This document shows, one piece after another, positions 31,313 through 61,536 of a DNA stretch of 64,000 bases. Within the stretch, counting starts at the first letter, position 1. Every line of letters begins with the position of its first letter. The notes below the pieces were generated by a model. That model did not search any database. It was not told the origin of the DNA and worked only from the letters and a program-made list of their open reading frames with translations. The stretch is taken from positions 1,363,197-1,427,196 of the forward strand of contig OZ287694.1 of assembly GCA_965649825.1 (NCBI GenBank), given 5' to 3'. Source of the DNA: Penicillus capitatus (taxonomy: Eukaryota > Plantae > Chlorophyta). The position numbers were made by a program, and so were the translations under genes.

Positions 31313-33555
31313 ATGGCGACGAGGATTTGCGTGAAGAATGTTCCGAAGGAATGCGACGAGAAGCGACTGGCGAAGCATTTTGACAAGTTCGGTCCCTTTA
31401 CCGATGTCAAGTTGATGCGCACGCCGTTAGTGAGCTCGTCTGTCGAAAGAGGAACCAAAAATGTGATATAGGGAAGGCGTTTCACGCGGTTTTGGCTTCA
31501 TCGGCTTCGAAACGACGGAGAAGGCGATGCAGGCGATCCAGTTCTTTGACAAGACCTTCATCGGAATGCGTCGTATCGCAGTGGAGGTCAGGAACAAGCG
31601 TGAACAGTATGGGTGGAATGCACATAGCTCGATCAAGTGCAGATGGCGAGAAAAGTGGGAGACGCATCGTTGTCGAGACCGTGGAGTCGATATTCAAGAG
31701 GCAGCTCAAGTTACCAAGCCCTTCATCCAGAAGAGCATCCAGCGAAAAGGAGTGAGAAAACGAAGGGAGACAGCAAAAAGAGTGACTCGGTCGCAAGGAA
31801 AGGTCGTGTCGTGCTTTTGTGATGCTTCGAAATGTGCGAAAGGAATGCAGAAGAGGATCCGGAGCTGCAGGAGTTTCTCGATGTTATGCTGCCGGTGAAG
31901 AAGACCAAGAAGGGCAGAGATTCAGATCCCTCGCTTTCTGTTCTCGCAGCTTCGCTCTACCTTCTGGTCACTCTTTTTTGTCTGATCAGGAAAAGAAGGA
32001 CGACAAAGTGACCAAGCGCAAGAGGTTGGAAGATGTGGAACAGCGAGAATCGGCGGATCCAGACACGGCGGCGTCTGCAGTTGGCTGTCGTCTGTTTGTT
32101 CGTAACTTACCGTATACGGCGACAGATTCTGATCTGGTCGAGGCCTTCGGTAGCTATGGAGATCTGACCGAAGTGCACGTCGTCTTGAATAAAGAGACGC
32201 AGAAATCGAAGGGTATTGCATTTGTGGAGTTTGAAGACGAGGCCTGCGCGTCCGCCGCTCTGCAGGAGATGGATGGCAGTATCTTTCGAGGACGGCTGAT
32301 CCATATCCTTCCCTCTCAGGAGAAACGGCACAAAGCGCAGATCGCTCACGCAGTGGAGACGGGAGGCGATGAGGGGAGCTCATTCAAAAAAGAAAGGGCA
32401 CAGAAACTAAAAGAGGCGGCCGGAAAGAGAGCGTCCTGGAATACCTTCTACATTCGACCCGATGCCATTGCTGAGGCCGTGGCGAATGACTACGGGATGT
32501 CAAAGAGTGACCTCATGGATCGCGATGCCTCAGATTTAGGTGTGCGTTTGGCTCTGGGCGAGACACACGTTCTGGCCAGGATCAAAGAGGAACTTGAACA
32601 GGCAGGTGTGGACGTATCGAAGCTCGAAGAAGCGGCACAGGCCTCCGGACGCTCAGCGACGCAGACATCGATCCCGCGCTGTAACGATGTCCTGGCCGTG
32701 AAGAATTTGCCGTACCATTCCGATGCCAAAGAACTGTCAGAGATGTTCTGTGGCTACGGTCCGGTGACGAGATTCGTGATGCCTGGCATCCGTGTCCTCG
32801 CTTTCGTGCAGTTTCATGATGCTGCCGATGCGCAACGTGCCTTTCGCGGACTGGCATACACCAAATACAAATCGGTGCCTCTGTATCTCGAATGGGCGCC
32901 ACTGGGAGTCCTGGCGGCGCCGCCGACGGCATCGTCTGCTGCAGATGCAGACGGAAAAGCGGAGGATCGAGAGGCGACAGAGAAGTGCTCGGGTGTGAGT
33001 TTGTATGTCAAGAATCTCGCATTCTCGACAAAAGACGCCGATCTGGCGGGTCACTTCGACACAGTCGTTTCCGAGATCGGCGGTCAGTTGCGTTCGGCTC
33101 GTGTGGCCAGACGGAAACATATCAACGGAGCGATCGTCTCCGCTGGGTATGGATTTGTCGAGGTCGATTCGGAAGAGGCGGCGAAACATGTCCTGCAGAA
33201 ACTGCAGGGATCTGTGCTGGACGGCCATGCGTTGCAGCTTCGACGCAGCGCCAAGAAATCGGAGATCGTTGAGGCGGTTGCCGAGGACGCAGACGAGCGC
33301 CCGGCGACGACCAAACTCGTCGTCAAGAATTTGGCATTCGAATGCACGCGACACGATGTCGTGACGCTCTTTCGTCCTTACGGCCACGTACAGAGCTGCC
33401 GTCTGCCAAAGAAATTCGACGGCTCGCATCGCGGCTTCGCTTTCGTGCAGTTCGTGACGAAAGAGGAGGCAAAGAGTGCACGCGATCGTGTCCAGGGGGC
33501 GCATCTCTATGGCCGTCGCCTCAACATCGATTTCGCGATCGATGAGAATGTGTGA
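31313..33555 (+). CDS. RBM19: Multi-RRM ribosome biogenesis factor MRD1/RBM19
   Basis: Begins MATRICVKNVPK. RRM motifs RLFVRNLPY, LAVKNLPY...PLYLEWAP, LYVKNLAF and LVVKNLAF...FDGSHRGFAFVQF. Confidence 0.93.
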
Positions 33556-33601
33556 CACATCGACCATCGCTCGGATCTTTTTAGACATCGCCGAGTTTCG
33601 T

Positions 33602-35151
33602 TCAAATGGTAAAAGGTCCAACGCGGATTCGCGACGCGTCGATCTCCTGTAAGCTCTCCAACAGTCGCCTCTCTTCGTCGCTCAACTTCTTCGGGATCTT
33701 CACATGGACGCGCACCTATGGGCCCGGCAAAGAGTCAGGCGTTGTAGATGAAGGGAGGGGGGTCGACCTTATGATCGCCGCGTTCCTTGGGCGATCCGAG
33801 TTTCGGCACACCGCGTTTCACCATGAGCAGCGTCATCTCCGGCTGCGTCCCGCTCGGAATCTTCAGTTCCACTTCGCCGTCGACGGTCGTGACCCGCACC
33901 GACGTGCCGAGAATGGCATCGATGTACGAGATCTCGACTTCTGAGTAGATCGTCGTGCCTTCTCGGCGCATTTTGGGATGGGTCTTGACGTTGGCAACGA
34001 CGTAGAGATCTCCAGGGGGACCCCCACGCAAACCGGCATTTCCTTCCCCGCGTACCCGCAGCCGCGCACCGTTATCGATTCCAGCCGGCACCTGGACCTG
34101 AATCTTCTTTCGGTCTGGCAGACGACCGTCGCCTCCGCACCGATCGCAGGGGGCGAAGATCTCGCCCGTGCCCTGACAATGGGGACACGTCGTCACTTGC
34201 TGAAACACGCCCAGCGGAGTGTTCATCGTCGAAATCACTTGTCCCGTTCCTTGACAATGCGTACACGTCGTCGGCGACGTGCCTGCCTTGACACCACTGC
34301 CGTTGCATGTCGTGCATTCGGTTAAGTGATTGATCTCGATATCTTTCGCCGTCCCGAACACGGCTTCCAGAAACGTCAAATCGACATCGACGCGCAGATC
34401 GTCCCCCGCCACCGCTCTCGACGCCGATCGCCCTCGTCCGCCACCGAATCCCGCCCCTCCCATGCCGCCGCCAAAAAACTGTTCGAACAGATCAAACGGA
34501 TTCGTAAAATCGCCCGGGGCACCACCCGGAAATCCACCCATGCCTGCTTTCAAACCCGCTTCGCCGTACTGATCGTAAATCTGTCGTTTTTCATCATCGG
34601 ACAGCACCTCATAAGCCTCACTGATTTTTTTGAACTGCTCCTCCGCTCCGGGAGATTTGTTCACATCCTACACAGCACAGGCGTTGCGCGTCTCGGAGGG
34701 TAAGGGGGCGGATAACGGGATGGTATTTTCGGGCTTTCTGTCGGTAGGAGTTCTTGATCGTTTTTTTGTCGGCTCCTCGCGGGACACCAAGCCTGTCGTA
34801 GTAGTCCGCAGCTGCACGTACCAACAGTGTCTCTCCCCAGCGTTCTCTTAGAGATGGCTCGGATCGATGGACACGCAAGGAGCATGATGTCCCTCCTGTC
34901 AGAAACCGCACACCCTCTGCGCGCCAACGACGAGAGTTGTGCAGGAACGAGGTGTGTTTCGTCAGAGGGCGCAAAGAACGTCGTCCAGTCGAGGGTACTG
35001 CACTTTGTCGCGAGACATCCTGAACGGCAGCAGGTGCCTAGCAACACACAACCCTCACTCGGCGCTCGTCTTCTCACTCAAGTGCCGAGCCGTCGACGAT
35101 CGGTGACGTGAACGTCGGACCGTCAACGAGATCGACTGACAGACTTACCAT
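33602..35151 (-). CDS. dnaJ: Plastid-type DnaJ (type I, J domain plus zinc finger)
   Basis: Transit-peptide-like N-terminus after an ATG-only first exon (ATG|gtaagt). J domain (DYYDRLGV...KYHP|[13 protein letters not shown]) and four CxxCxGxG-type repeats. Confidence 0.93.
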
Positions 35152-35280
35152 GGTGCGTGAAGGGATGGATTGTTGGGAAGACCTTCCAGAACAAATCGTC
35201 CCGGTCGACATGGCACAGATGGATTATCATCTAGAGCGACGATGATGAACGATAGCGTCTCGCGCTGACGATTGTCGAGA

Positions 35281-35352
35281 TTCGGAGTGGCGCAGCGGAA
35301 GCGTGGTGGGCCCATAACCCACAAGTCCGAGGATCGAAACCTCGCTCCGAAA
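35281..35352 (+). tRNA. trnMi: Initiator tRNA-Met (CAT)
   Basis: Cloverleaf TTCGGAG-TG-GCGC-AGCGGAA-GCGT-G-GTGGG-CCCATAA-CCCAC-AAGTC-CGAGG-ATCGAAA-CCTCG-CTCCGAA-A. It has three G-C pairs in the anticodon stem and A54/A60, diagnostic of eukaryotic initiators. Confidence 0.95.
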
Positions 35353-35357
35353 CTTCA

Positions 35358-35361
35358 TTTT
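35358..35361 (+). terminator. Putative RNA polymerase III terminator (T4)
   Basis: TTTT run 5 nt after the tRNA discriminator base. Confidence 0.6.
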
Positions 35362-35362
35362 G

Positions 35363-35397
35363 CGATCGATCGATCGATCGATCGATTCGATTCGATG
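35363..35397. repeat. (CGAT)6 microsatellite with degenerate TCGAT units
   Basis: Direct reading: cgatcgatcgatcgatcgatcgattcgattcgat. Confidence 0.9.
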
Positions 35398-35912
35398 CGG
35401 GACAGTACAGCTCGATGTGTTAATCCACAAATACAGTATCCATGCCGTCCTCAATCATCCATACGGGTATCTTCATTCTTAGCCTCAGCTGTTGCACGCA
35501 GTTCCTGAATAATTTTGGCCAATCCCTGAAAACGGCGCCTTCTTTGTGAGAAGGCATCGTCCGTGTGATACTTCTGGATGAACGCCTTGTTGAATGAGAC
35601 CCAGTGAGATAGACAGCGTCTCTCTGCAGAAGCCCTTCTACATCACACAGCAGAGCAGACGTGTCGAAGCGCACTTGTCGAGTCCAGTATCGAGTAACTG
35701 CGAGATTTCGTGCAGGACTGCAGACAGACAGAAGATTTGGTTTTCAAACATGACATAAAGGCGATGACTTTCGAGGGCGTCTCGGGTGGACTGTGCAGCA
35801 GACCGATCCATCGAACGTGATGTCGTGTACGTGCGAAGGCAATGTTCGACGGCAGAATGACATTTGATGCATCGCGTCCGTTACGATCTCCGACGCACAG
35901 ACGTCAGCATCG

Positions 35913-36944
35913 ATGGCATTGAGGTCGGCCGGACGACGCGGATTCCGCTTGCTGACGTCGTGGACGGCATCGAGGCGCAGCGACGATAGCGATGTTCGTG
36001 TGTTCGCATGGAGGCACGTGCGTTCCGTTACCCCTGCCTTGTCGTTTCACCTCTCTCTTATGCGATGTGACAGGTCATTGTCTCGCCAGCCAACGAAGGA
36101 TACCTCCACGAATGTTTCAGACACTTGACTGCGTCCAAGGTCGTGATGCGGTATCGCGAGATCTGGAATGGTGTATGGAGTTGCGTTTTAGAAAGGACAA
36201 GGGCAGGAGAAGACGGCGGCTACACGAAGGAACGAACAAATCGATGCCCCAACCGTCCGCCTCGTCCATGCAGACGGACGCCATGAAGTCGCCCGCACGT
36301 CTACGGCAGTTCCATGTGCTGATCGACACGTGTGTAGGTCATCCCTATGGCAGCAGCATTGGCACAGGCAAGAGCCGCGCACTTGGATTTGGTTGAGGTG
36401 ATGAAGGGAACGATCATCGAAGGAGTGTGCACGATCCTGGTGGTTGCAGGTTTCGCCTGGGGCTAAACCGCCCGTCGTTCGGATGATAGATTTCGAAGAG
36501 GTGAAGCAGAAGAGCCGTGCCAAAGAGCGCGATCAGATAAAGAAAAACAGAGAACGGCAGAAAACCGATCGCGTTCGGGAGATTCGTCTGACGCACGTCA
36601 CATCACTCTTTCCCTTCTTTGTGCGATTTTTGTCTGCATAGTCCTCGCATCGGTCCGCACGATCTGGAGATGAAGATCAAAAAGATCACAGAGTTTTTGG
36701 AGAAGCGACAGAAGGTCATGGTCGTGGTCATGACCCCATCGATGGCGGACAAGCAGATGGGACAGGAGGCACTTCAGTATATACGCTCCTTGCTGGCAGA
36801 CAAAGCCAAAGTCCGTGATCCCTTTAGTTCGCCCGCTTCGATTTAACCGTCGCTCTCGTGCAGCTCTGCGACGAGTCGAAGATCCGTCGGCACGGGACGG
36901 TGTCGATGATGCTGTTGCCGCTGTCCGAGAATAAAGAAGATTAA
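35913..36944 (+). CDS. infC: Organellar translation initiation factor IF3
   Basis: Spliced [20 protein letters not shown]...[13 protein letters not shown]...VREIRLT|[21 protein letters not shown], with an N-terminal targeting-like peptide. Confidence 0.85.
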
Positions 36945-38113
36945 AAATCGCGATCGGTGTTCGACGCTTCTTTCAATAGCCGCTCCGCAACGGAGAGGTC
37001 ATCGGGCGTCGTGAGCTTGATGTTGGTATAAGAGCCTTCCGTGATTTTGACGGGCATTCCCAATGCCTCGATGATCGACACATCATCTGTCACTTCAAGA
37101 TTCTTCTCTTCCACAAACGCAAATCCTTGTTTCAGCAGCTCAGGCTTGATCACCTGAGAGACAGGCATTTTTGAGAGACATCGAGCAAGCGGGATGTGAC
37201 TTGAGGCGTCTGCACTTCCCAGAGCTTCGCCCGTTCGAGCGTCCGATGGACGAAGAGCGATGCGTCGACTTCTTTGATGGTGGGTTTGACCTTGACGCCC
37301 AAAACGGCGGCGCCTGTTTCTAAACCGTCCACGAGACAGCGGGAGACATCGTTGGAGAGAATCAAAGGACGTGCCGAATCGTGAATCGACACCAAGAGAG
37401 CGTCATTGCTGATCTGCTGGAAGCCATTGAACACACTGTCTTGTCGTTCTTTCCCAGGCATCGCCCACTTGAGCGGAACAGAAAGAGCCAACTGCGCCAC
37501 GCTCTCCTCAAACACATACCTGCACCCATCCTCACTCTAAAAGAGTGACCTCCGATCATTACTCACCTCCATGATGGATCGCAGACGATCACGATCTCAA
37601 GCGTCTCGCGCATTTTCGCAAAGGTCTCGAGACTGTACGTTGCGATGGCTCGGCCATTCAATTCGATGAACTGTTTGGGAATCGATGCCTACGATACAGA
37701 CCGCTCGATTGGCATAGGGCAGCTGAGTGTATGTGCGTGTGACCCCCATGCGTTTTCCGACACCGCCTGCTAACAGAACGACGCTCACACTTCTATCTGG
37801 AACATCACTCTTGACCTCATACATCGAGATGGGACTCATGATGCTGAAGAGGCAGAGGGGAGCTACCATAGCCGATTCTGTCGCGAATGTGATGATGTGA
37901 CGTCTCCCATGAGCACCTTCCCCTGTTCACCACACGTGTGATTCTATGATCCGAAACAGACGATCGATCACCCGCCAATCTCCGACACACAGACGTCCAC
38001 GTCGCCGATCTTCGTTGCGTCGCGCAGGTGGCGGCGCTCTGTCGATGGGTCGAGGTCAAGGTGCCGAAGATGCGTCCTGTCGAGCATCGAAATCGCGCGG
38101 CACAGGAGATCAT
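36941..38113 (-). CDS. ispD: 2-C-methyl-D-erythritol 4-phosphate cytidylyltransferase
   Basis: [13 protein letters not shown]|[25 protein letters not shown]|[13 protein letters not shown] and [10 protein letters not shown]. Start codon approximate. Confidence 0.93.
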
Positions 38114-38165
38114 GGAGTTAATGACACGCATCTGTCGCGTGGCCCCTGTCCTGTGTGTATTGGCC

Positions 38166-39152
38166 ATGCGTCTCTTCTTCGCCACGCGTCGTGCGACGTC
38201 GTTTCTGCTGTTGCTGCAGAGAGGGATCTCCGGTATTTCGGGACACCGCAATCCGCCGTTTATTAACCCAGAAACGGGCATTAACTATGGCCGCATGCTC
38301 GATAACACCCCTATGCAGCTGCAGGCGCCACTGAAAGAGATCGCTGACGTCTTTCGGCTCAAAGGCATCATCGCCCCCTTAGGCAACAGACCACATCCCG
38401 TTCGCTTCCTCGTCAATTGCCCCGACGAAGAGATCGTCAAATGGTACTCTTCACTCATCCACGGCATGCTCAATTACTACAGGTCGCACGCCAAACGTCA
38501 CATCAAAAGAGTGAGATGATGTGACGTCTCTAGGCCGTGTGACAATTTCATCAACATCAAACGCCTCTGCGAGTATCAGATCCGTTGGTCCGGCATTATG
38601 ACCATGGCGCACAAACACAAGAGCTCCAGCGCCAAAGTCATTCGTCAGTACACTCGAGATCTGATCGTCATGGATCGAGAGGGAAAAACGATCGTGGCCC
38701 GTTTGCCCGACAAATTCTACATTGGCTCACTGGGACGTCAGTTTCTCCCAGGAGTCGAGAAGGACCGAGTGGCGCGCGTTTTGCGAGGCGCTTCGCTCAT
38801 TGCCGACGGTAAACGGATCATCCGGCGATGCGCCGTCTTCGGCTGCACCAATCTCGATGTCGAATCCGATTTCGCCCAACACATCCCGCATTTCAAGCGA
38901 AATCTACTGGAGTCGACAAAGATCGGCAGTCTGGTCGCCATGCGCAATGCGATCATGCGACGGCCAATTCGTCTATGTGTGGAACACTGGAGCGAATTGC
39001 ACAAGGGTCGCGTGCGGCTTGAGCATTTGGATTATACAATGGTTATGGGCCGCCGACGCAATACCTTCTACAAAGATCCTCTGGAGACACAACGCGAGTA
39101 CAACTGGGCGCATTATCGCAGAGATCCCTTCTTGGAAACCCTTCCCAAATAA
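38166..39152 (+). CDS. Nuclear-encoded group II intron maturase-like protein (domain X plus degenerate HNH/Zn domain, no RT)
   Basis: One 51-nt intron (38483-38533) joins EEIVKWYSSLIHGMLNYYR|PCDNF...YQIRWSGIMTMAHKHKSSSAKVIRQY (domain X consensus GxxNYY...TLAxKxKxS..K+I.+Y). C-terminal CAVFGC...RRPIRLCVEHWSELHKG. N-terminus MRLFFATRRATS looks like a targeting peptide. Confidence 0.85.
38495..38527. repeat. Perfect 11-bp inverted repeat inside the maturase-gene intron
   Basis: ACGTCACATCA-aaagagtgaga-TGATGTGACGT. Confidence 0.9.
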
Positions 39153-39313
39153 CAGCCCCGTTCGACCGATGCCCTTATCGAAAGTAATAGATGATGCCTG
39201 TCGTGCTAACAAACACGAGCATCGGCAAAAAGATAGCAGCAAAGGTGGATGCGGTCACGGAAGGCACGGATCTCTCCAGTCCCTCTTCCTCATACACATC
39301 CGATGCCTTGTTT

Positions 39314-41369
39314 TTACTGTGAACAGAACAGAACACGGTTTTGGCGGCGGCTATTGTGATAGACGGACTTTGTATTGTGCTCGTCTTCGGTCGTGGACGC
39401 GAGTTGTATATAACGTGGCAGATTCGATGGCGGCGCCGCCGCTGTCAGCAACCGCCAGGAAATGACGCGGCCTTCTGTTTGATCGGCCGAAGGCGCTGGA
39501 TAGTAGAGACTCGCTACGATGACCAACCCAACAGTCAATGCAAACAGTATTGGACTGACGTAGTGAAAGTTCAGACAGAAGAAGCAGTTTGCCCAAGTCA
39601 ACGTCTACAGCATCGATGTCCAGCAGACGACGGCAGAGAGGACAGACCTGACGGTTATCAGGATGCACTTGCTGATCGCACGTGTCTTGAAAGACGAGGA
39701 AAAAGATGAGGCGAATGGCTCCGACGAGGGATCCGATGGATAGCCCGATGACGGCGCCTTCGCTGTTGACTCTTCTCAGGAAGATGCCACAGGCAAAGAC
39801 GGCAGTGATGGATGGCCCGAGATGGTTGATGATTTCGGAAGCCACGATGAACAGACTGCGATTGGAGGCGTCGATGACAGGGATCCACAGAAGGGTCAGC
39901 ACAACGAGACCCACGACGGCGATCCGGCCAACTCTTGTCACTTCTCTTGCGCTCAGTGCCTCTCCACACATCACAGCTGATGAGATTGGAGGAGATAGTG
40001 TGATAAGTGTGACTGACCCGTATGGCAGAGACACCGACCGTAAATGTCGTAGGTAAACATCGCCGATACAGAATTGAAGAGAGAGGAGAGAGACGACATC
40101 ATCGCCGCCAGAAACGACGCGATCATGAGTCCCTTGACACCATGAGGAAACTCATGCAGAACCAGCAGAGGGTAGGCTTTGTTCGCTTCGTGCGATGCAT
40201 CCAGCGACGTTGAGCACCAGGCAGGAAAGGATGCACCCGACGGATCTGCTCGACACCATTCGAACAGCAGACGCGCCACCATTCCCGGGAAAACTAGAAA
40301 GTGGATGCTGCGTGGAAGGGAGGTAGCCCAGTCGGTGTACCGATAATAAAGAGGGGCAGCAGTTTGAGCAATGCCGCTCCGGCGGTGCCCAGTCGTGCGT
40401 GGTGGAGATTCTTGGCACTCAGCACACGCTGCGCCATTTCTTGATCCAGACACCAGCACCGCATTCCGCCGATGAACAGGGCCAGCCAAGTGCCGAGCCA
40501 TGGGAAGTCTCGGTCGTCAAGAGGACGGATCAAATGCGGAAAGGACTCTAACTGAACGGCTTCCAGTTTCTCAAAGAGGCCACCGATACCGCCGACGAGA
40601 CGCAGAGAGATGAGACTGCCGACGGCGCCGCCAGTTAACAGGATGACGCTCTGAATGGCATCGGTGATCATCACTGCCTGCCAGAGGGTGTCCAGCAAAG
40701 GGCAGTGTGTGAGAGGTCACACTTTTAAGCCGCCGATGATTGTGTAAAGCGCCGTGAGGCAGACGATGAGTGGCGTCGATTGCCAGATAGTGAGTCCGGT
40801 GACCACTTCCAGCACGACCGATCCGGCATAGAGGGTCGCCGAGATGGTGGCCAAGATATGCGTCGCGATCAGAATAGCCACAAACACAAATCTGCAGAAG
40901 CATAGGACGAGGAAAGAACTTCGCAATCGTCGTGCTGCTGTACCTGCAGATTCTATTGAAACGCAGTTCCAAGTACTCGGGCGTGGTCCGAATATTGCAG
41001 TGGATATAGAGCGGGGCAAAGACCCAGCCCAGCAGGATGAGAAGATAGGGCGCCGAGAGTTCATACATCGCAACAGCGATGCCAGATTTCGCAGCCGTCC
41101 CTGCCATACCAACAAACTGTTCACTTCCTACAAAGCGCATCCCCTTATGCCTGCCCTTGTCTAGGGGGTATGTTCGCGAACGTACCAACATTTGCGGCGA
41201 AAAGTGAGGCCGCGACGATGTAGTATGGCATGCAACGCCCAGCAAGGAAATAATCATGTGTCGTCGACGACCGGCGCTCCTGTTTTCCTAGAGAGTAGTA
41301 GATACCGCAAGCGACGACCACGGCAACGGACGCTGCGACAATAACAGTGTCGATAAGATGCAACGCCAT
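39314..41369 (-). CDS. Sodium:solute symporter (SLC5/SSS family)
   Basis: DYFLAGR...ASLFAANVG|SEQFVGMAG, WCLDQEMAQRVLSAKN and AAMMSSLSSLFNS. Many short introns; C-terminal exon uncertain. Confidence 0.9.
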
Positions 41370-41437
41370 CGGTTCCGTTTTGCCTCACTCGATAGAATAA
41401 CCAACCACCCGGGCGACGCGCCGGATGATGTGACAGG

Positions 41438-44400
41438 TTACGTCAAACTGTCAACAAGCTCCTGTGCCCGATGGACGATCGAAGGCGATAGGCCTTGATC
41501 GAGAGCAACCTCCAGACCGAAGCTCTCTTCGCAGAAACCGGGAAGCAGCTTCCAAGTGGTCGTCTTGCCTCCGTTGGCGCTTCGTCCGACTTCCATACGG
41601 TAGAAGACGGCCTCCGGGAAATCTTCGGTGAAGTTGGCGATCTTGTGCAGATGTGTGGCGAAGACGCCGAAGCAATGACGATCGTAGAGTTCTTTGAAGA
41701 TCGACGCCGAGATGGCTGTCCCTCCTGTCACTTCCGTTCCTTTGCCCAACTCGTCGATGAGCACCAAAGTACGCGACGTCGCATCGTGCAGGACGTGGGA
41801 CATTTCGGTCATCTCTACGGCAAAGGCGCTGAGATTTTCGAGCGGGCTATCCGTCACCAGGGTCTTGAGATTGACGCAGTCCATGAAAGGCAGAGCAGCC
41901 GCGCTGGCCGGAACGTAGAATCCGCATACGCCCAGGCAGCAGACGGCGGCGATCGATCGCAGAACAGTCGACTTTCCTAAGAGGCACACCATCGGAGAGG
42001 AGGCAATGCGCAGGAGGAAGAGTGTACCTGCCATGTTGGGTCCCGTCAGAATTGCCATACGTTTTAGCGAGAGGCTATTCAGCGTGCTCTCTTCTCGACG
42101 CATCCAGTAGGGCCAGAAATCGATGATCTCGAGAGGACCTGGCGATCTGGTCGTCAAGCGTGAGATATCTGGCAGACACCAATGACGTGACTGCGCTTCG
42201 GTGACGTGACTGGCCAAGGCAGTGAGAATAATAGAAGAGTGAGAAGCAGCAACGAGCGTCGAGAGATTCTGCACCAGATAGACGACGAGCTGCTGCATGT
42301 GCCGCTGAAAGGCTTCTTCCCAAGCCACCCACACCGCACTGGAATAAAATCAGGAGCGAGGCACGTGGATAGACGACGTCTTACCGGTAGCGATGGATGA
42401 GAGGCGTCAGCGATTCGATTTCGTACAGATCTTTGCCAAAACGCGTTTTCGTTCCAAGGCCGTCGGAATGGTGTCGGGAAACGGCGCCGCCATTTTCGGG
42501 GAGTTGCAGAGCGATGGACATGTTCTTGATGTCGAAGTAGATGCCATCGTATGCGCCGGCTGGATCAGATGGCTCGGTTGCATCGTCGGCCACACGGGGC
42601 ACATATCTCCGGTACTCCTCCACAAAGCTGCGCTTTGCCTGTCGAATATCGTCCATCTCGTCCAAGAGAAGCTCGCAATGGACGCAGTCGTGATAGAACG
42701 ACGCCATGGACTCCAGGAACCTCTCATAAGCGTCGTCTTCTTTGCCACGCTTCGAGAAGAAGTTGCCCGTTGTGCATTGGGCTGTTGACCGATCGTCCGC
42801 CGCATAGAGATCGTCTCTCAAAACCTGCACGTGACATCGCGTTCGCATACGATCTGTTGACCGACATCCGACTGCACCTGCGAGATCGCCTTGACGATTT
42901 TCGTGCTCTTCTGCCGGAACGATATCTGCTCCACTTCAAAATGCACTTCCTTGCCCACGATGCCCAAGAGAGGCGAGATGATACGGACCGAAGCTGGATC
43001 TTCCAACAGCGCGATGATGCCGTTCAACATTTTTCGCAGCTCGTCCAGAAACTCAACACTCCATTTCCCATGCCTCAGTATCTGGCACCGCATGTCGTGC
43101 GATGCCGTCCATCGAATGCGATAGACGTACTTCCACGATTCTGTTGGGCGCCAGTCGGGCATTGAGTTGAGGGATAGAACAGGCCGTCTGCGTCAGTTCC
43201 TGACAGAGCTGATGGATTCGCCTTGCCGTTTCGGGCGACGGTGGATCCAAAATACATCGCCGCATCCAACTCATCACAAGCTTCTGGCATCGCTCTGGGA
43301 GGACGACCTCCATGAGAGGCAAGACGCCACTGTGCTCTCTGGGACAGATACCGAGTTCGCTAACCGTCGACAACGGCGGCGGCGATGTGCGTTCTTTGAC
43401 ATCGTCCGTCAAGACAACGCACCGATCGATATCGATCTGCAGATTTTTCTGCAGCATCAGTTGCCGGAAACCCGCTATGGGATCCTCTGCCTGATAGCGA
43501 TCGACCGATCCGAACACAGACTTGGCGATATCTTCTGCCCTTTTCTGCCATCCTCTGAAATCCGCATCGATTCTTGCCCCGGGCAGCGACGAGATGTGCA
43601 CGTAAAGGGGCGGCGTCATGCCAGTCGAGTTGAGCTTTGCCCAGAGTCCTTCTTCACTCAAACGCGACGTGATCCGCATGGCGTTCTCTTTCACATCGTA
43701 CTGAAGGAGTGAGAAGCCTGTCTGCGACCACCAAACCGCCGCCAGTGGATTCGATCTATCCTGCGCTTCGTCTATCTGAGCGAGATCCCCGTCTTTCAAG
43801 GCGTAGACGTAACTGGACGTTTGGGTTCCGTCGATGATCGCCGCGACATAGTGCCGTCGGTAGTTTCGGTTTTTTCCGATTCTGTTCAGTTGATCGGATT
43901 CTTCGCAGATGACGACTTCGAATCCACATTGCTGGACGATTCTGTGGAGATAGTATGGCAAGTTTTCTGGCGAGCAGCGCACACGGGCGACGCCGTCGGC
44001 GCCCACAGGAGACATGTCACCAAACTTCATCAGCATGACGGCATCGATACCCACCGCCACATAATACTCGCCCGAACGTACCAACACAATGCGTTCCGGA
44101 TTCTGAAGCTTCGTCTCTCGAAAGAAAGAAAAATACGTCACCTGGATCGCACTCCTAAGTCCATGGCGTCTTTCGACTTCTTCATACCTTCTTCTGGGCG
44201 GCGCTGTCCAGCCAGAGCGGTTTTGAAGAATCTAGGCTCTTGAGGTAGGGCAGTGTTGACGGATCTTCGATTTCTTCGACCACTTCGTGCCACGTCTTGC
44301 GTCGCAGGATCTCGGGATCCTTCGCAACGAACCATTTCCCGTTCCACATCCGCTGCATTCCGAACACATAACGACCGAAACGGCGCGTTTGGCCGAACGG

Positions 44401-44457
44401 TGGGGTGCTGCGAAACGACCAGCCGATCGCCTTCCGCAGTGCACTGCGCGGCCACAT
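41438..44457 (-). CDS. MSH1: Plant-type MSH1 (organellar MutS) homologue lacking GIY-YIG
   Basis: Collinear with plant MSH1: DPSTLPYLKSL, IVLVRSGEYYVAVGIDAVML, SYVYAL, ILDPPS, ILTGPNMAG|KSTVLRSI, VLIDELGKGTE, FATHLH and WKLLPGFCEESFGLEVA. Stop after RAQELVDSLT. Confidence 0.88.
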
Positions 44458-44523
44458 GGAATTGCACCTGTCCCATCATCCACTTCCTTTCGAATCGGCG
44501 TCTTCCTCGACAAAAAACGAAGC

Positions 44524-45568
44524 ATGGCAAGACGCGCCGTTCTCACTCTTCTCTGGCTCGTTATCGCCACGTTCTCACCCCAACGCGACGTCCTCGCCGC
44601 GTCCACGTCCGTCCTCTTTGTCCTCTCTCCGAGACCGCCATACGCTCGTGTAGTGGCCTGACTCTTCCGAAGGTTGTCTGCGAGAATACTGCGTCTGGAA
44701 AGTGAGAACACCTGGATGCCGTCATGGTGTGCTGAGTGCCATGCTGCCATGAGGTACTACTTAACAGACAGCGAAGGAAGAATGTGTGAACGGTCGTTCA
44801 TCGATACCGAGACAGCGTGCTGCACCCGTGGCACACAGTTCTCATGCGAAACCTGCGAGAACGATGCCTGCTGCGGCCGTTATGAAGACTGCGTCTCGTG
44901 CTGTCTCGCACCGAAGAATGACGCCTCCAGTCATTACCTGAAAGAATACCGGTCACACTTTTCTCACACACTCCATCGCTAACGTCATTGCGCGAAGTGT
45001 CAGGGTTCGTGGACGGGAGGATACGGGAAAGTGGCCCAACGTCTTCCAGTACTGTCAGGGAATCTGTCGAACGTGGAGGCACAGCACCACACATGAGAAT
45101 GCCTTCATCGACACCCGGCGATACTGTTACTCGGCATACGGCCGTCCCACGGTATTGCACTCCTCCGACCTCAGCGTTCAACGCATATCGCCTTCTTAGA
45201 TACCAGAGGCTGTCCCACTACCGACGCTGTCGGAAGACACCGTCGTCGTTGCCGGCGAAGCGGGAGAGAGTTGCGATGTCGTCTGCTCTCGTAGCTCCAG
45301 TCTTTGCTCAGTCGACGATTTCCCTGCCATCCAGAGCTGCAATATTCTTCGCACATTCTTCATCTGCGAGGCTGGATGCGGTGAACTGCACGAAGAGAAG
45401 GACGAGAGACATGAGCCCTATTACATCGTCGAGAACACCGAGAAGCGCAATCGTCCAGCCTATTGCGTCATCCATGCAACGAACGGTGAATCACCAGCCA
45501 ACGCTTGTCAGTGGAATAAGTCCATCATCCGGCGCATCTGTCCCTGTCGGAAAATAAAGGAGACGTAA
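44524..45568 (+). CDS. SPRING1: SPRING1/C12orf49-like Cys-rich protein with C-terminal MGAT5-like Cys-rich module
   Basis: Signal anchor, then TDSEGRMCER...CC...CETC...CCGRYEDCVSCCLAP...YCQGICRT...HENAF...YCY. A spliced last exon gives GESCDVVC...ACQWNKSIIRRICPC. Confidence 0.75.
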
Positions 45569-45673
45569 TGAACAGACATTGAGCATCTGATCTGTCTGTC
45601 GTACATTAACATCGCGCATCTTTCCGACGAGATCTTCGAATCTCTTACGCGTTTTCTCCGTCTTTTCTGCGCG

Positions 45674-47530
45674 ATGCAAACGGAACGCGTCTGTTGGTCG
45701 ACGCTACCCTCTCCGTTATGCGTCGCGCGTTTGTCGCCGAGCCAATGGTGTCCAAGAGGGTCCGTCGCCCGACGAAGTTCCTGGGGTGCGATCGACGCGA
45801 TTACCGTTCCCCAGAGTGGACCAGCACAGAACGCCATTGAGGAAGATATGCGCCATCTGTTCGAAGATTTCGCCAAAGGATTTCAATCCGTCTCATCTGA
45901 GGCCGAGACGAGCGGATGGATAACGGACGTGGAGGGGGAGATACCGAAGGAACTCACGGGGACGCTCTTGCGTAACGGCCCGGCGTTGTTCGAGCGCAAC
46001 GGCGTGCGCAAGGAGTTCCTCGACGGCGATGGAATGATCACATCTGTCGCCATTCGCGACGGCAAAGCTTTCTTTCGCAATAAGTTCATTCGAACGGATT
46101 CGTTTAAACGCGAAGAGAAGGAAGGCGATTTTCTCGACCTGTCGATTTTTACGGCCGAGGATCCACGCGTTGCCAAAACGGGCCGTCCCATCTGGCAGAT
46201 TCGCCTCTTCGATGATATCTTCAATGGCCCACCGTCGCCGAAAAACAACGGCGCCTTCAATGCATGGCACTGGGGCAACACTCTCGTCGCCGTCGATTTC
46301 GGTCGACCGTTTCAGCTGGACAAACAAACACTGGATACGACAGAGCGCATGGACGACTTTGCCAAGCACGATTTTACGGCGCATTCCCGGCTGATGACAG
46401 AGAGTGATGGATCCCAGCGCCTTGTCTGTTTCTTGCCTTTCGTCGACTGGGCCAAACAGGAGGCTGAAATCACCTTCTTTGAATTCGATGAGCAAGGAGC
46501 CTGTCTCTTGCAGAAGAAATTCAAATTTGCACCGGCTTACTTTCATGACCTCATTGTTACCGACAAATGGTACCCTCTGCATGGTCACTCTTTTTTGGAA
46601 TCTCACACAAGTGTGGCGCGCGCAGGTATATTCTGTTCGACTGTCCGATCAAGATGGACTATTTCCGGACGTTTGTGAAGTATCCTTTGGGACAGGTGGG
46701 GTTGGGCGATACCGTATCGGAAGATCGCGATCGTCCGCCGATTTTTCGTCTCTTCCCTCGTCGATCAGACGGCGACATGATCGAGATTCCGGTCATCGAT
46801 AAGCATTGCTATGCTTACCATCACGTGAACGGTTTCGATCTGAATGACGAAGGGACGAGAGTGGTCTTCGACACATGCACGTGGGACAACTTTACGCTCT
46901 ACTTCAAAGACATTGTCGAGCCCGACGGAGAGAGATTTTTTCCCAGAACACAGGTGACGAGGTTTACGCTGGATCTGGAGAAAGGCCATGCGACATCTGA
47001 AATGGTCAATTCACGACCGTGCGAGTATCCAACGGTCGCGCCCTTAGCGACAGGGACCAAGTATGGTTGATTCTCAAATGTTGATCTCGGCGAGGGCCTT
47101 TGCCAGGTACAAACACATGTACATGTCGAGCAGCGCTGTCCGATTTGACGAGATCAATGGCCCACTGCAGTCGTTGACGAAAGTGTCCCATGACACGGAT
47201 ACAAAAGAGACGAAGGAAATGAACTGGTATCCCGGAAAGAGGAGATTTGTGGGTGAACCGCTTTTCGTTGCTCGCGAGGGGTCAACGAGCGAAGATGATG
47301 GATGGATTGTTGTTCTGGTACACGATGGCGGCGAGGTGGCGAATTATAAGGAATGCTCGTGAAGAAGGTGGTGATGGAATTCTGTGTAGAGGTGTGGAAC
47401 GGGACTGGCGATTTTGGATGCGCAGGACATTGAAGCAGGACCTGTGGCGATGATGCGACTTCCAACCTATGTTCCCATGGGCGTTCATGGTTCCTGGACA
47501 TCTGACTACATACTGGGACCCGGCGTGTGA
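45674..47530 (+). CDS. Carotenoid cleavage oxygenase (RPE65/ACO family)
   Basis: EGEIPKELTGTLLRNGPA, FLDGDGMI, DFTAHSR, YFHDLIVT, YHHVNGF, RPCEYPTV, GEPLFV...EDDGWIV and PMGVHGSW. Confidence 0.93.
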
Positions 47531-47839
47531 AGACTCGAGACGCTCTGAGTGACAGGCGTCGCTCTTTTTTGGCAAACGGAAGAGAAGAAACTCATTCTTC
47601 ATTTTTACCTTGAACACTTTTGCTTTCGGGAAAAGTAAAAAATAATGGACGATTGATTTGTCATTGAACAATTCTGAGAGAAACGCAAAAAAGACACTCA
47701 GATAAAGATTAGGTCGCTTACTCCCTCTCTAGCGACCACGTACATGTCTTTTCATATCAACTGGGATGTTATACGCCGAACCCTCGACAGGAGGGATTTT
47801 CTAATGACTTTTGCTCTGCTGCTGATTGAACAGATCGTG

Positions 47840-48690
47840 CTACAGAATGTGTTCTTCGTCACGGATGTAGTCCCCGACGTCTGCTTGGTGCAGTGCCACG
47901 GTCGCCGTGGGATCGATGTCTCTGCACTGCGCTGTTGTGCGCACGGACACGGCGAAGCCCAGTGGGATGTCCGACATGCTGTAGACCACCACGCCGGCAT
48001 TCACTGGCATGTTCTCCGTTATCCTCCCCACTCCCGACTTCAGGATGTGGTGGCTGTACAGGAACTGCTGCTCGGCAGACGGCTTGACCCAGATCTGCAG
48101 CAGCACACGAAGATCTCAGAAGCAGGAGGAGCTTAAATCAGGCGGATGCAGTCATCACGAAGACCGATGGTCATCATCAGGGATCCGAGCTCCTCGGCGG
48201 AAAGCTGAAAAATGGCAGGAATCATGCCGCGCACGGCGGATCATCCGCGAGCCGCTGTTCTCTTCACGGGAGCCCTTCGCCCGAGTTCGCGCCTCACTTT
48301 GCAGACGGCGTTGTCGGCGAGCAGATCGAGGGCGCCGATCGTCAGGTGGAACTTCTTGCTGTGCGTGAACTTGCCGATGCACGTTCCGAGGCCGACCAGA
48401 TCTGCCCGGGGTATCTACAAAGAAGCCCAACTAGGCGCTGGACGCGGGACGTCGAGACGCAGGCGGACGTTCACGGCGCTCCGGACGAGGCTCTCCCTGG
48501 CGTAGAAGACCTTGTCCCTGTGCAGCCGGAAGCAGTGGCTCTCGCCGCCTCGCTCCGTCAGCTTGGAAAGGTTGGCGCCGACGTACTTGAGAAGCTTCTC
48601 GAAGACGAGCTTCGCCTCCTGAAGGGATTGGGTGTCTCGCGAAAGCGAGTCCAGACGCTTTGAGTCTACCTCTTCGGTCAGCGGTCGCAT
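47840..48690 (-). CDS. NIP7: 60S ribosome biogenesis protein NIP7, copy 1
   Basis: MRPLTEE|[14 protein letters not shown]...[10 protein letters not shown]...|[27 protein letters not shown]|[13 protein letters not shown]...[12 protein letters not shown]. Three introns. Confidence 0.95.
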
Positions 48691-48892
48691 CTTCCGTCTG
48701 ACAGCCCGCGGACGGTGGAAACGGGATCCGCAGTGTCCCTCGGCGCGAACGAGCGACTGAGAGGACAGCTGCTGATGGAATGTCGTATATAATGAGCTGA
48801 CGTGAGCCGCTGTTTGTAATTGCTACATTTTCTGGAGCTTTCAACCTCGACGCAGCACACTCCGTCTTCTTTGCCGTGAGAGTCTACCTACG

Positions 48893-49337
48893 ATGCGTAG
48901 AGGGCGACCGAAAAAAGTGACGTGGGAAAACATGAAAGAGGGACTGACGAAGGCCGAAATAAGTGTAAGCATCCTCGAAAGTGCCAGGCTTCGTTTCCAC
49001 GCGAGTTATCCCTCTCCAGGCGGATTTGAGCAGAATTTTAGACAAGAAAGTCGACCCGAAGGAAACGGGTCGGGTCGCGCAGCGTAAACCGTCCCGGAAG
49101 AACCCCCCTCGTTCGTTGGGGATCGAAGATGACGAGTTGTACGAAGTGGATTTCATTCTAAAAGAGCGGACGACCCCCGATGGGAAGAGAGAATTACTAA
49201 TCCGATGGAAGGGGTACGGCAAGTCCGAAGACTCGTGGATACCAGAAAACAATCTCTCCTTGCCGATGTCGGCCTATCCGTTTCCTGGAAAAAACAAGTC
49301 AAAGGGAAAAAATAATGTAGTGTCAAGAAATTCGTAA
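48893..49337 (+). CDS. Small AT-hook plus chromodomain protein, copy 1 (~129 aa)
   Basis: Exon 1 MRRGRPKKVTWENMKEGLTKAEIS, a GTAAGC...CCAG intron, then exon 2 with LYEVDFILKER...LLIRWKGYGKSEDSWIPENNL. TGTAA at 49369. Confidence 0.75.
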
Positions 49338-52300
49338 CTAACTAACAGCGACAGTAAACTGGAAGGCATGTAATCCCAACTAGAGAGAGAGAAAACCATT
49401 TCGTGTTAATTTTTCTCGTCAAGTTTTCTCGTTCTACGCGCTTCGAGCGGGCCGAAAGCTTACACAAGTAGTTAAGCAGGTATGAGTGTTGGAAGAATCT
49501 CGACGAATGCCGCGTTCCACTCACAAATCTACTCATCTGGTACTATGGTTGGTACCGTAACAACTTCATTTCTGATCATGAAACCGTAAAAATACTGTCC
49601 CGCCTCACTTGCAAATACGATACTAACTCTTAACCGAATGAGTTTCAGACGTTGTACAATTCATTGAGTTGGTATGTGCATAAACTCGATCAATGCACAG
49701 ATCCGATGACGAAAGCAATTAATTTATGTGTTCATAAGTTTTTTCTTTTGTGCACGATTTTTATTGAACCTAACGTATAACAACAGCCTTGCAGAGCTCT
49801 TTTTGTGGAAAGGTTACAAAACAGATTTATCGTCCGGTTGCTTATCATGTCTATGAAACTGTCAGAAGGATTGAAACGTCACATCGAGACTGCCTAGATT
49901 TCCAAGGGTTCTGCCTCCGAAGGGGCGCTCATAAGGGGTTCACTGTTACTTGTCCGGCCACATCCTGGGTATAAATCCGTGAATGTGGACATGTAGGAAC
50001 CTTTGCTCTGTAACTGTGAAAGCTTTCCTTTGACAGAATCTTCTGTGTCTGATGAGCATTAGACGACCTTGCGGTTTGTGTGGGTGTTGGAAATGCGGCG
50101 GTTAACCACCTATTGTAGCCCATCAAGGACGGTTGGGTTTGTGCGTAATTACCTTGGCGTTCTGGCCATCGGTCGCGACGGGTGTTAACCTCCGACTAAA
50201 ATTTCTACTAACCGTACTGCGATGGTTATGGAAAAAAATACTAAAGTTCGCTACCGTTAGCCCTGAAGGTCAGGGAATCCTCAACCATCCTGGATATTTA
50301 AAGGCAGCAGTTTCAAGTAGGATAACCCGTGTTCTCTGTATTAACATTCGTGTGCGTTTTCGTCGAAGTCGTTTACCTGTGTCTTCACTCAACTCATCTC
50401 GAATTCGTTCACACACTCCCAACAGTAGGATTCTTAGAAGTCTTCAGTAACTCAGGCAGTTAGATTGCGAAGAAATCTTGTTGAGTAGCCAGAGTGCCAG
50501 GCGGTGTGGATGAAAGGAATGATATGGACGACTGCCATTTCCAGTTGTTCTTTGCGCGACGTTTTTCTTCGAACTGAATAAGTGTGACGACCTTGTTTGT
50601 GAGGTGATTCATGCATCCGTAGGTAAGTCGTTCTGAGTCAATGAAAAAGTAACTGTTGGAAACACTCAATTGAGCTTGTTAGCCGCTTACTTGGCTTTAA
50701 GCACCTCTCTTATACTGTCTCTTGTAGCTAGTAAGGATTTAGGATAACTGATAAAAGCACGGACTCTTCCAGGGCGAACGAAAGACGTGACAACGACAAT
50801 GAACAGTTATTGACCCGTTACTTTAAATGCATCGAGCGTTGATATGCTTGGGTTGTTTTGGACACGCGTTTCGAACGACATGTTTAGTGAAATGAAGAAT
50901 AGGTATTTCATTGTTTTTGGAGAAGCGGTGGGTTTTGCAAGCGTTTTTATTCTACAAAAAACGCATCGATGCTTGTACTGTTAGATCGCTCAAAATGCGT
51001 TGCTTGAGTAGTGATGGCCATGTGAAGACTCGATTGGTTTTTGTACATTGCGGAAGAAGATGTCTGTGTGAATGTAGCATTGTGTTGTATACATGAAAAG
51101 ATCGCGACGGGGAGGCAATGCATGATGGTGATGTCTTGACAAGCGGCATGACATCATGTGGTATTTTGAGTTCCCGAACGAGATAATCTTATATTCGCTT
51201 CCAGCCAAGAACTACTATTGCAGTGCTTTTTTCCACGCGATTTGCGCCTAACGGAGGTTATCGGCTGAGAGTTCTTTAAAGGCCGTTGCTTGGTATCGTT
51301 GTAGGGAGTGTTATGGTCGAATGTTCTGAAAGTTGTGAGTCGTAGAAACAATGCGAATGGTTTCGTCCTTGCCTTGGTTCGAAGTTCCGGGTATGTAGGT
51401 GATGACGTAAAACCGCTTCAGTTCATCATGGCGAAATTAGAGATCTTTCGAGATCACACGAGCTGCTGATCCATGCAATATAATGATTAATGTCTTCGTG
51501 ACTTTAATGCTCCTCTACAGACATCTCGAAACTTCATAGACCGTCTGCGTTTCGTTTCTACTGGTACATCTCTATGAACTTTCCTTCTTATCCTCTTGAT
51601 CTTTTTGTTTTGGAAGGTCTTCAAACTTTAAGCATTAGAAGGTAAAGCCTGTTTCCAAAGAGCTCACCGTTAGGAGTCTTCTTCACATGCAATTCGCCTT
51701 AAACTACATTGCAATGGTATTTTTAGCTGATGTACGCGTATAGCAGGTAGTCCGCACGAATAACCGAAGTTTCCATGATCATGCTTCTGCTCATCATCTC
51801 CTTTTCCACTAGATTATGCTGTATTCGAGGCATGCGTTTTTTCTCGATGGCCCTATCCAGTTAACACTATCTATCATTCTTGCTAATGAGGTAATTCCAA
51901 CAGCTGTCCAAAAAACAATCTATCTAAGAATGCTACATGACTTGTGTAGTTGGGAATAGCTGGTCATACAAACCCAGGTCGCTGTCGCCGGCCTCGCAGG
52001 GAAAACGAGATCACTGCGGAAGTTTCACAAGCTTTCGGAGCAAGGTAACACTAGGTCCAGATAGTCCCTTAAATACTTGCGTGATGACGCTACTTCAGAG
52101 TCAGATGAATCAGCCCCACTGTCAGCACCACAGAACAGCGTCCCTAAACGCACTTGGACCTTGTCTGACAAGACAGTGAAGGAAGGCCCCCTAAGCAGAT
52201 GCCCCCTTGCATAACAAGACAGTCACATCGACAAGGAAATCTTGGCGACAGTCGCATGATTTTTCAGAAAATGCATCGCCACTTCAAGGCGTCGTTATGG

Positions 52301-60135: not shown

Positions 60136-60477
60136 TACTTAGAACCACCCATCGGATGAGGCCTCGAAACCCATTGAGCTGAAGGTATCACAACTCCGCT
60201 TCTTGGCTGACCAAAGAATGAAATCCATTCTTTGTTTACTTAAAGCTATTAGCCGCTTCTGCTTTCGGAAGAGGCAAAGAAAATGGACAGTCTAGTCGTC
60301 AAGGAACGAGGCCAAGGAAATAAAGAAAGGACATTCGACCTAGATAAGAGTTTAGTCGCTCCCTCCTTCACGACTAAGTACAAGTCTCTTAATATAAACA
60401 GTAGATATTGACGAAGGCCTCCGTATAGAATGGATTTTCCAAACGTTTCTACTCTGCTGCTGATCGAACAGATCGTG

Positions 60478-61330: not shown

Positions 61331-61536
61331 CTTCCGTCTGACAGCCCGCGGACGGTGGAAACGGGATCCGTAGTGTCCCTCGGCGTGAACGAGCGACTGA
61401 GAGGACAGCTGCTGATGGAATGTCGTATATAATGAGCTGACGTGAGCCGCTGTTTGTAATTGCTACATTTTCTGGAGCTTTCAACCTCGACGCAGCACAC
61501 ACCGTTCGTTGTCTCTGCCGTGAGAATCCGCTTAGA

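Follow-up and report, generated by a model that had tools for sequence, protein, structure and literature searches.

A 64,000-nucleotide stretch of eukaryotic nuclear DNA from the green alga Penicillus capitatus (contig OZ287694.1 of assembly GCA_965649825.1, positions 1,363,197 to 1,427,196; hereafter the window, with a GC content of about 0.51) carries on its minus strand a six-exon MSH1-like gene (44457-41438 from start to stop codon) whose product is a MutS protein of 924 amino acids (aa). We conclude with high confidence that this gene is a plant-type MSH1 paralogue that lacks both the GIY-YIG nuclease and the Phe-X-Glu mismatch-recognition wedge, and that is kept under purifying selection beside a canonical MSH1. 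The very low mutation rates of plant organelles are attributed to plant-type MSH1, which is believed to couple MutS-type recognition to a GIY-YIG cut with subsequent recombinational repair, a coupling that has proved hard to dissect biochemically. The GIY-YIG domain (domain VI) is treated in the literature as the hallmark of the MSH1 family (10.1101/2020.02.13.947598, PMC12292046), and a first-pass annotation of the window, made from the sequence alone, had taken the fusion of MutS with GIY-YIG as the definition of MSH1; as a universal definition this is too strong, mosses having kept the nuclease-less MSH1A/MSH1L (PMC10487979, PMC7076466).

The state of the wedge can be read directly from the DNA. 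The minus strand at this point reads ...VLVRSGEYYVAVGIDAVM..., with codons for E115 at 44069-44067, Y116 at 44066-44064, Y117 at 44063-44061 and V118 at 44060-44058; the wedge region of the protein is VLVRSGEYYVAVGIDA, and Y116, Y117 and V118 occupy the Phe-X-Glu columns. The orthologue of the gene, found at a locus (L001) on a 1.18-Mb contig of ENA ERZ26696514 that runs collinear with the window for 18.5 kb (85% identity), encodes 929 aa with the same SGEYYVAVGIDA and the same intron positions. In an alignment of 98 MSH1-family proteins with bacterial MutS, which aligns as GDFYE, the wedge region is present in 89 members; Phe is found in 84 of the 89 and Glu in 85. Members without Phe are the window protein and its orthologue (Tyr), a Caulerpa protein (P0001; Cys), a Bryopsis protein (P0017; Gly) and P0136 (Asn), and those without Glu are the window protein, its orthologue and P0001 (all Val) together with P0160 (Asn). 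The ATPase motifs are intact: the protein has the Walker A motif GPNMAGKST, the Walker B motif LVLIDELGKGT, SAFAVEMTEM (matching the SxFxxEM signature) and FATHLH, and it keeps the catalytic His and the C-terminal helix-turn-helix.

The reading frame ends with a TAA stop at 41440-41438, directly after the helix-turn-helix (...IVHRAQELVDSLT, the final residues being ELVDSLT). From the start of Walker A to the C-terminus the window protein has 184 residues, as against at least 320 in GIY-YIG-bearing members, and a Pfam search of the protein returned only MutS_I (aa 94-196) and MutS_V (E = 1e-44), with no GIY-YIG match. The stop at L001 is aligned with that of the window but is TGA rather than TAA, and L002 and P0023 also terminate within 10 residues of the helix-turn-helix. 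For a search of the DNA itself, a GIY-YIG hidden Markov model (HMM) was built from 70 MSH1-type domains and run at maximum sensitivity on all stop-to-stop segments in six frames; 106 of 167 family proteins are recognised by the model. It detected no GIY-YIG coding potential in the whole 64-kb window or at L001 (best E = 0.27, at the level of noise), nor in the Logan contigs L002 and L003 that bear more distant members of the paralogue group, and neither the window nor the retrieved related loci, to which the search was confined, yielded a stand-alone GIY-YIG gene. The stop codon overlaps a GT dinucleotide, as it also does at L001; enumeration of the splices that such a donor would permit gave only 11-43 unrelated residues at nearby acceptors or a chimera with the downstream symporter gene. 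A hidden GIY-YIG exon was rejected on the strength of the six-frame HMM scans together with this enumeration. The first-pass annotation had already noted the replacement of FXE by YYV, the intact ATPase motifs, the end of the open reading frame (ORF) right after the helix-turn-helix, 68 nucleotides (nt) before the ATG of the symporter gene at 41369, and the unrelated residues gained from a possible intron at the stop, and all of these are borne out by the direct reading, the alignments, Pfam and the splice enumeration; its coordinates, 41438-44457, also coincide exactly with the stretch between stop and start codon in the refined gene model.

Of the six domains of MSH1, the five that make up a full MutS are all predicted to be present, and just domain VI is absent. 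An AlphaFold2 model built on a 33-sequence alignment has a mean predicted local distance difference test score (pLDDT) of 80 and a predicted template modelling score of 0.74, and in Foldseek about 900 of its columns align with full-length Escherichia coli and Thermus aquaticus (Taq) MutS at template modelling (TM) scores of 0.63-0.77; MSH2, MSH3 and MSH6 are also matched. The N-terminal 46 aa contain 10 basic and no acidic residues, and residues 1-49, with pLDDT below 50, are predicted to be disordered. Because the N-terminus is basic and acid-free, the protein is probably targeted to mitochondria and/or plastids.

Word-indexed homology searches (queries: the complete protein, Bryopsis P0017 and the N-terminal 655 aa) reached only Caulerpa P0001 and bacterial MutS, while an exhaustive profile search opened the family, returning hundreds of plant-type MSH1 proteins. 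Most of these carry GxFYE and a C-terminal GIY-YIG domain (...CVYVxRxxDGxFYxGET...), the nearest full-length relatives being GIY-YIG-bearing, and a small set of closer fragments was found with them. P0001 is 41% identical to the window protein over its full length. The nearest named relatives, from Caulerpa and Bryopsis, place the window in Bryopsidales, and its GC content agrees with the 52.4% given for Ostreobium quekettii rather than the 40.4% of Caulerpa (10.1101/2020.07.21.211367). Cluster look-ups named the following members from Caulerpa and Bryopsis.

P0001, Caulerpa lentillifera g5142: wedge CYV, GIY-YIG absent.
P0021, Caulerpa lentillifera g3858: wedge FYE, GIY-YIG present.
P0015, Bryopsis sp. 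KO-2023 BSKO_09273: wedge FYE, GIY-YIG absent.
P0017, Bryopsis sp. KO-2023 BSKO_12287: wedge GYE, GIY-YIG present.

A third copy of the locus (L006, ENA ERZ25074695) is 99.55% identical to the window across 12.9 kb and is therefore taken to belong to the same species. A search for other MSH1 copies, as the first-pass annotation had suggested, found a canonical MSH1 with FYE and GIY-YIG in both assemblies and in Caulerpa. In the metagenome assembly that holds L006 it lies on another contig (L004), at a coverage of 41x vs 34x, and in the assembly that holds L001 it is found at L005 (180x vs 149x). Both L004 and L005 encode LIQVGDFYETMGHDA (GDFYE), GPNMAGKST and a separate GIY-YIG ORF (HMM E = 2e-27 to 2e-28; 2e-28 for L004), which at L005 is above the Pfam cutoff, and the N-termini of the canonical copies are likewise basic and acid-free. 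Caulerpa lentillifera has both copies, g5142 being the paralogue and g3858 the canonical gene, and at least one GIY-YIG-bearing MSH1 is present in every examined genome that has the paralogue. An MSH1 with a predicted GIY-YIG domain has already been reported from O. quekettii by Repetti et al. (PMC6944098). Since the canonical MSH1 occurs in the same organisms, the window gene is a paralogue, and its lineage keeps a standard MSH1.

Phylogenetic analysis points to the origin of this paralogue. Neighbour-joining trees with bootstrap were used, with 103 sequences for the placement of MSH1 relative to MutS; distance methods alone were applied to the deep relationships, at about 30% identity. Bootstrap support is 100% for an MSH1 family that contains the window protein and leaves out bacterial MutS1, a placement also separate from yeast-type MSH1, and 98% for a single clade of all MSH1 homologues from Bryopsidales, which excludes P0033, P0060 and P0066 (taken as streptophyte from their motifs alone). 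Within it are a paralogue clade (window, L001, L002, L003 and Caulerpa g5142) and a canonical clade (Caulerpa g3858, P0113, L004 and L005), each with 100% support. These separate clades within Bryopsidales imply a duplication internal to this order and independent of that leading to moss MSH1A/MSH1L, and the best explanation is that a duplication within these siphonous green algae, or at their base, gave rise to the paralogue. An identity as MutS2 or another Smr-type MutS was considered and rejected: domain I is present, there is no Smr domain, and MutS2 is only distantly similar (E = 1e-5 to 1e-9).

Purifying selection on the paralogue was assessed by the ratio of nonsynonymous to synonymous divergence (dN/dS; Nei-Gojobori) between the window and L001. 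The overall dN/dS is 0.14 (dS 0.45). Domain I shows dN = 0 across 103 codons at dS = 0.39, and the ratio is 0.09 in the ATPase domain, 0.32 in the presequence (aa 1-45) and 0.35 in the lever/clamp region (aa 471-650); the canonical MSH1 has values of 0.10-0.13. The window, L001 and L006 all keep an intact open reading frame. A functional gene rather than a decaying duplicate is indicated by this purifying selection, and the dN/dS of 0.14 and the intact frames rule out a pseudogene. Comparing the window lineage with Caulerpa, the paralogue and the canonical copy are about equally conserved in domain I (43% and 45% identity) and in the ATPase domain (61% in both), whereas in the clamp region the paralogue is only 10% identical vs 29% for the canonical copy; the clamp region is the fastest-evolving part of the paralogue, and the ATPase/helix-turn-helix dimer module is the slowest. 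At the wedge, the Phe position is Tyr, Cys, Gly or Val across the paralogue clade, with conserved neighbouring residues. L002 has the wedge region RNGYEAVGIDA (and the C-terminus ...ELIASIEH before its stop), while that of L003 is HGEVYEAIGIDA; Glu is kept in both, and Val is found in the window lineage and in Caulerpa, which lie in different sub-branches, implying parallel changes from Glu to Val.

Bryopsis presents a complementary pair. P0015 has FYE without GIY-YIG, and P0017 has GYE with GIY-YIG, so that in Bryopsis wedge and nuclease seem to reside on separate proteins. A scan of 10 kb downstream of the P0015 gene (L007, BSYQ01000008.1) revealed no GIY-YIG coding potential, and no canonical-clade member from Bryopsis was found among the protein set searched. 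Both proteins, like the window protein, fall within the Bryopsidales MSH1 clade and have the EAVG(I/F)DA signature after the wedge; they pair weakly (66%) beside the paralogue clade, to which their motif signatures tie them. P0015 thus resembles the window protein in having no GIY-YIG domain but keeps FYE, and P0017 resembles it in having no Phe at the wedge but keeps the nuclease.

How such a protein might work can be framed by analogy. In the E. coli and Taq MutS structures only one subunit of the dimer inserts its wedge. MSH2 is a full MutS subunit that has kept domain I and lost a functional Phe-X-Glu, and it works only with a wedge-bearing partner. We tentatively favour, at somewhat less than even confidence, a role for the paralogue as a non-recognising subunit of a heterodimer with canonical MSH1, as MSH2 is with MSH6. 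After import into mitochondria and/or plastids it would act there as an ATP-driven DNA clamp, with no mismatch sensing by a Phe wedge and no DNA cutting of its own, and canonical MSH1 would supply the single wedge and the nuclease to the heterodimer. This reading is preferred because MutS dimers use one wedge, because wedge and clamp are relaxed in the paralogue and the dimer module evolves slowest, because a GIY-YIG-bearing copy co-occurs in every examined genome, and because the two features are split in a complementary way in Bryopsis. Several points weigh against it. Paralogue and canonical copy are only 39-42% identical in the ATPase/helix-turn-helix module; the extreme conservation of domain I between close species exceeds what a passive subunit might need, and could reflect a DNA-binding specificity of its own; the weak placement of the Bryopsis proteins (in neighbour-joining only) bears on the history of the losses; and in Physcomitrella, knockout of MSH1A gave no detectable phenotype and did not enhance that of the MSH1B knockout (PMC7076466), which lends no support to an obligate partner role in the moss and calls for caution in assigning an essential one.

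The same conservation of domain I, very strong despite the loss of the wedge, fits a retained but altered DNA binding, and is one of the grounds on which the paralogue might instead be an autonomous, homodimeric MutS clamp that recognises structures other than simple mismatches, for instance D-loops, Holliday junctions or recombination heteroduplex. Such a clamp would suppress or channel recombination in the organelles without a cut of its own, and might do so through factors that it recruits. The predicted five-domain fold, the intact ATPase motifs and the helix-turn-helix dimerisation element are consistent with this, as are the localisation of moss MSH1A to organelle nucleoids (PMC7076466) and the account of Arabidopsis MSH1, in the passage of PMC12292046 that cites Penafiel-Ayala 2024, as acting on recombination intermediates with no preferential mismatch binding in vitro. 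We regard this reading as somewhat less likely than the heterodimer: conservation is lowest in the clamp region, the part in contact with DNA in known MutS structures, the wedge position varies whereas a new specificity should have fixed a new residue, and a GIY-YIG-bearing MSH1 accompanies the paralogue in every examined genome. A division of labour between organelles, with one copy serving plastids and the other mitochondria and the nuclease-less copy confined to a reduced, cleavage-independent role, seems improbable. Arabidopsis MSH1 is dual-targeted (PMC12292046), so duplication could split the targeting; the N-termini of both copies are basic and acid-free, the presequence evolves fast, and in Bryopsidales the mitochondrial genomes are inflated while the plastid genomes are compact (PMC6944098). 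Both moss paralogues, however, go to both organelles (PMC7076466), and the loss of the wedge is left unexplained by a division of this kind alone.

Far less probable still is that the apparent loss of the nuclease is an artefact, the GIY-YIG exon being distant, trans-spliced or in an assembly gap, or that the gene is a partial duplicate in decay. Plants commonly have partial duplicates of MSH1 (PMC10487979), and the GT overlapping the stop codon in the window and at L001 could be read in favour of an exon beyond it; but splices from that GT give only unrelated sequence or the symporter chimera, no GIY-YIG coding potential was found in the 64-kb window, L001, L002 or L003, the aligned stops of the window and L001 use different codons while L002 and P0023 end at most about 10 residues past the helix-turn-helix, and intact frames with a dN/dS of 0.14 do not suit a gene in decay.

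Among the possibilities raised in the first-pass annotation, that of a neofunctionalised, clamp-only paralogue is supported by the clade with 100% bootstrap, the purifying selection and the predicted five-domain MutS. The nuclease may be provided in trans, with the canonical MSH1 of the same species, and not a stand-alone GIY-YIG gene, as the obvious donor. A lineage with relaxed organellar repair finds no support, the canonical MSH1 being present, seemingly intact and constrained. Extending the heterodimer reading to the whole group, we hypothesize, as a conjecture that is more unlikely than likely, that siphonous green algae independently evolved an asymmetric organellar MSH1 heterodimer resembling MSH2-MSH6, in which wedge and GIY-YIG are needed once per dimer and are divided between paralogues. 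From the motifs found in each copy, the window lineage and Caulerpa may have placed both features on one copy and neither on the other, and Bryopsis may have arrived at a wedge-only and a nuclease-only copy.

The relation of the window protein to known systems can be summarized as follows. By profile search and tree it belongs to the same MutS subfamily as plant-type MSH1 (Arabidopsis CHM/MSH1, AT3G24320, with algal, protist, bacterial and giant-virus relatives), sharing with it the five-domain MutS core, the ATPase motifs and the presequence-like N-terminus; it differs from plant-type MSH1 in having no domain VI, in having YYV for FYE, and in being a second copy beside a canonical one. In Physcomitrella patens and other mosses MSH1A/MSH1L is likewise a nuclease-less MSH1 paralogue long kept beside a full-length MSH1 (PMC10487979, PMC7076466), and the moss duplication has been described as moss-specific (PMC10487979); the moss and algal proteins are of independent origin, analogous and not orthologous, and loss of FXE is shown here for the Bryopsidales copy. 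Nuclease-less MSH1 paralogues are thus already known, and the Bryopsidales paralogue is not a new system. We came across no account, in the searchable literature, of the Bryopsidales clade, the loss of Phe-X-Glu in it, or the complementary pair in Bryopsis. MSH2, as part of MutS-alpha (MSH2-MSH6) and MutS-beta (MSH2-MSH3), resembles the window protein in structure (Foldseek matches to MSH2 chains at TM about 0.62), but is nuclear and belongs to another MutS clade, and heterodimerisation of the window protein is hypothetical. The best structural matches are bacterial MutS1 proteins (E. coli MutS residues 1-800 and Thermus aquaticus MutS; ATPase sequence E = 6e-36), both ending at the helix-turn-helix; they differ in having GDFYE, E. 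coli MutS carries a further domain, for tetramerisation, at its C-terminus, and the window protein groups with MSH1.

The Bryopsidales paralogue and the Bryopsis pair amount to natural separation-of-function alleles, and, if the asymmetric-dimer reading is true, to a natural series in which the link between lesion recognition and DNA cleavage in MSH1 could be tested. They could reveal whether MSH1 works as an asymmetric dimer, whether one nuclease per dimer is sufficient, and what a non-sensing, non-cutting MutS clamp does in organelles. The organellar repair toolkit of Bryopsidales is of direct interest because their mitochondrial genomes are inflated and intron-rich (PMC6944098). There is also a warning for annotation: a match to "MSH1" in Bryopsidales does not amount to a working MutS plus GIY-YIG protein until the copy has been identified, and, conversely, one copy without GIY-YIG does not mean a lineage without it.

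The gene model underlying these results was built from frame continuity with GT..AG introns and then from homologues, as a six-frame translation scatters the gene over several frames. Five short GT..AG introns were placed, of 46, 49, 53, 46 and 51 nt in order from intron 1 to intron 5. All features below are on the minus strand.

44188..44457, exon 1 (aa 1-90): start codon and presequence-like N-terminus, then a conserved segment preceding domain I; an in-frame stop lies just 5' of the ATG, and the N-terminus is alignable with Caulerpa P0001.
43131..44141, exon 2 (aa 91-427): domain I of MutS, the connector and the beginning of the core (Pfam MutS_I).
44132-43824, MutS domain I (aa 94-196; Pfam MutS_I E = 7.8e-6).
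44058..44066, Y116-Y117-V118 (codons TAT TAT GTG) in the Phe-X-Glu mismatch-recognition positions, from direct reading and the family alignment, and the same in the L001 orthologue.
42878..43081, exon 3 (aa 428-495): core and lever helices; acceptor from Caulerpa homology, donor from the L001 frame.
42385..42824, exon 4 (aa 496-642): the fast-evolving lever/clamp region (dN/dS 0.35 for aa 471-650).
42028..42338, exon 5 (aa 643-746): lever helix and start of the ATPase domain, with the first part of Walker A (GPNMAG), from alignments.
41977..42027, intron 5 (51 nt): in frame and interrupting Walker A, with GT..AG ends; 65% identical to L001, as against about 90% in the flanking exons, with 4 of 51 nt differing from L006.
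41438..41976, exon 6 (aa 747-924 and TAA): rest of ATPase domain V and C-terminal helix-turn-helix, with no sixth domain (Pfam MutS_V E = 1e-44).
41370..41437, spacer of 68 nt between the MutS stop and the ATG (41369) of a sodium:solute symporter (SSF) gene on the same strand; 83% identical to the L001 spacer (64 nt), with SSF Pfam matches on the orthologous ORFs.

Comparison with relatives settled the less obvious splice sites. The acceptor of intron 2, before exon 3, was set by homology with Caulerpa (ILRHGKWSVEFLDEL vs IFKSKKLTLEFLDEL), and a 79-nt form of this intron was dropped for the 49-nt form after the Caulerpa alignment. For intron 3 the donor GTGCAG is the sole site that is in frame in both the window (53 nt) and L001 (57 nt), and a 26-nt alternative with the donor GTATGC was ruled out, as it breaks the frame in the L001 orthologue. 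Identity between the window and L001 ranges over 77-90% for exons and 61-72% for introns; exon 2, for example, is 90% identical at the nucleotide level and its flanking introns 72%. Intron 5, being in frame, is read through by prokaryote-style ORF callers, which gives a spurious 17-aa insertion in the P-loop, as in the database protein P0167. Within the 68-nt spacer the 3' end of the MutS transcript and the promoter and 5' untranslated region of the symporter gene must overlap or be extremely short; a scan of the spacer for sigma-70 promoters and terminators was set aside as having no bearing on a eukaryotic nuclear gene.

Between the window and L006 the gene differs by 19 synonymous and 7 nonsynonymous codons, with the introns most divergent. 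Of the 54 mismatches separating the two sequences, 36 lie inside the 3.1-kb MSH1-like gene (41370-44457), a divergence of 1.17% vs 0.18% in the flanks.

The gene order RPE65-SPRING1-MutS-SSF-IspD (window 31480-49724) is conserved in L001, L002 and L006, that is, a carotenoid oxygenase of the RPE65 family, an ORF with a SPRING1 domain, the MSH1-like gene, the SSF symporter and IspD. Next in the order, in both the window and L001, come DnaJ and a multi-RRM protein. The L002 lineage has, between its MutS and symporter genes, an opposite-strand ORF that contains a Mito_carr domain. Collinearity with L001 ends near 49.7 kb. A 1.7-kb direct repeat (47693-49379 and 60337-62021; 92.8% identical) brackets about 11 kb of DNA of lower GC content (0.41-0.49), and the stretch of L001 that matches the repeat includes an ORF with a Chromo domain; a retroelement with long terminal repeats is one possible origin of this region, a local duplication or insertion another. 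At the other end of the window (256-1398) lies a single-exon ORF of 380 aa, for which an exact-sequence look-up returned no copy from the public collection; it belongs to the mTERF family (Pfam E = 8e-40), has a basic N-terminus and, judging from its sequence, is likely another organelle gene-expression factor.

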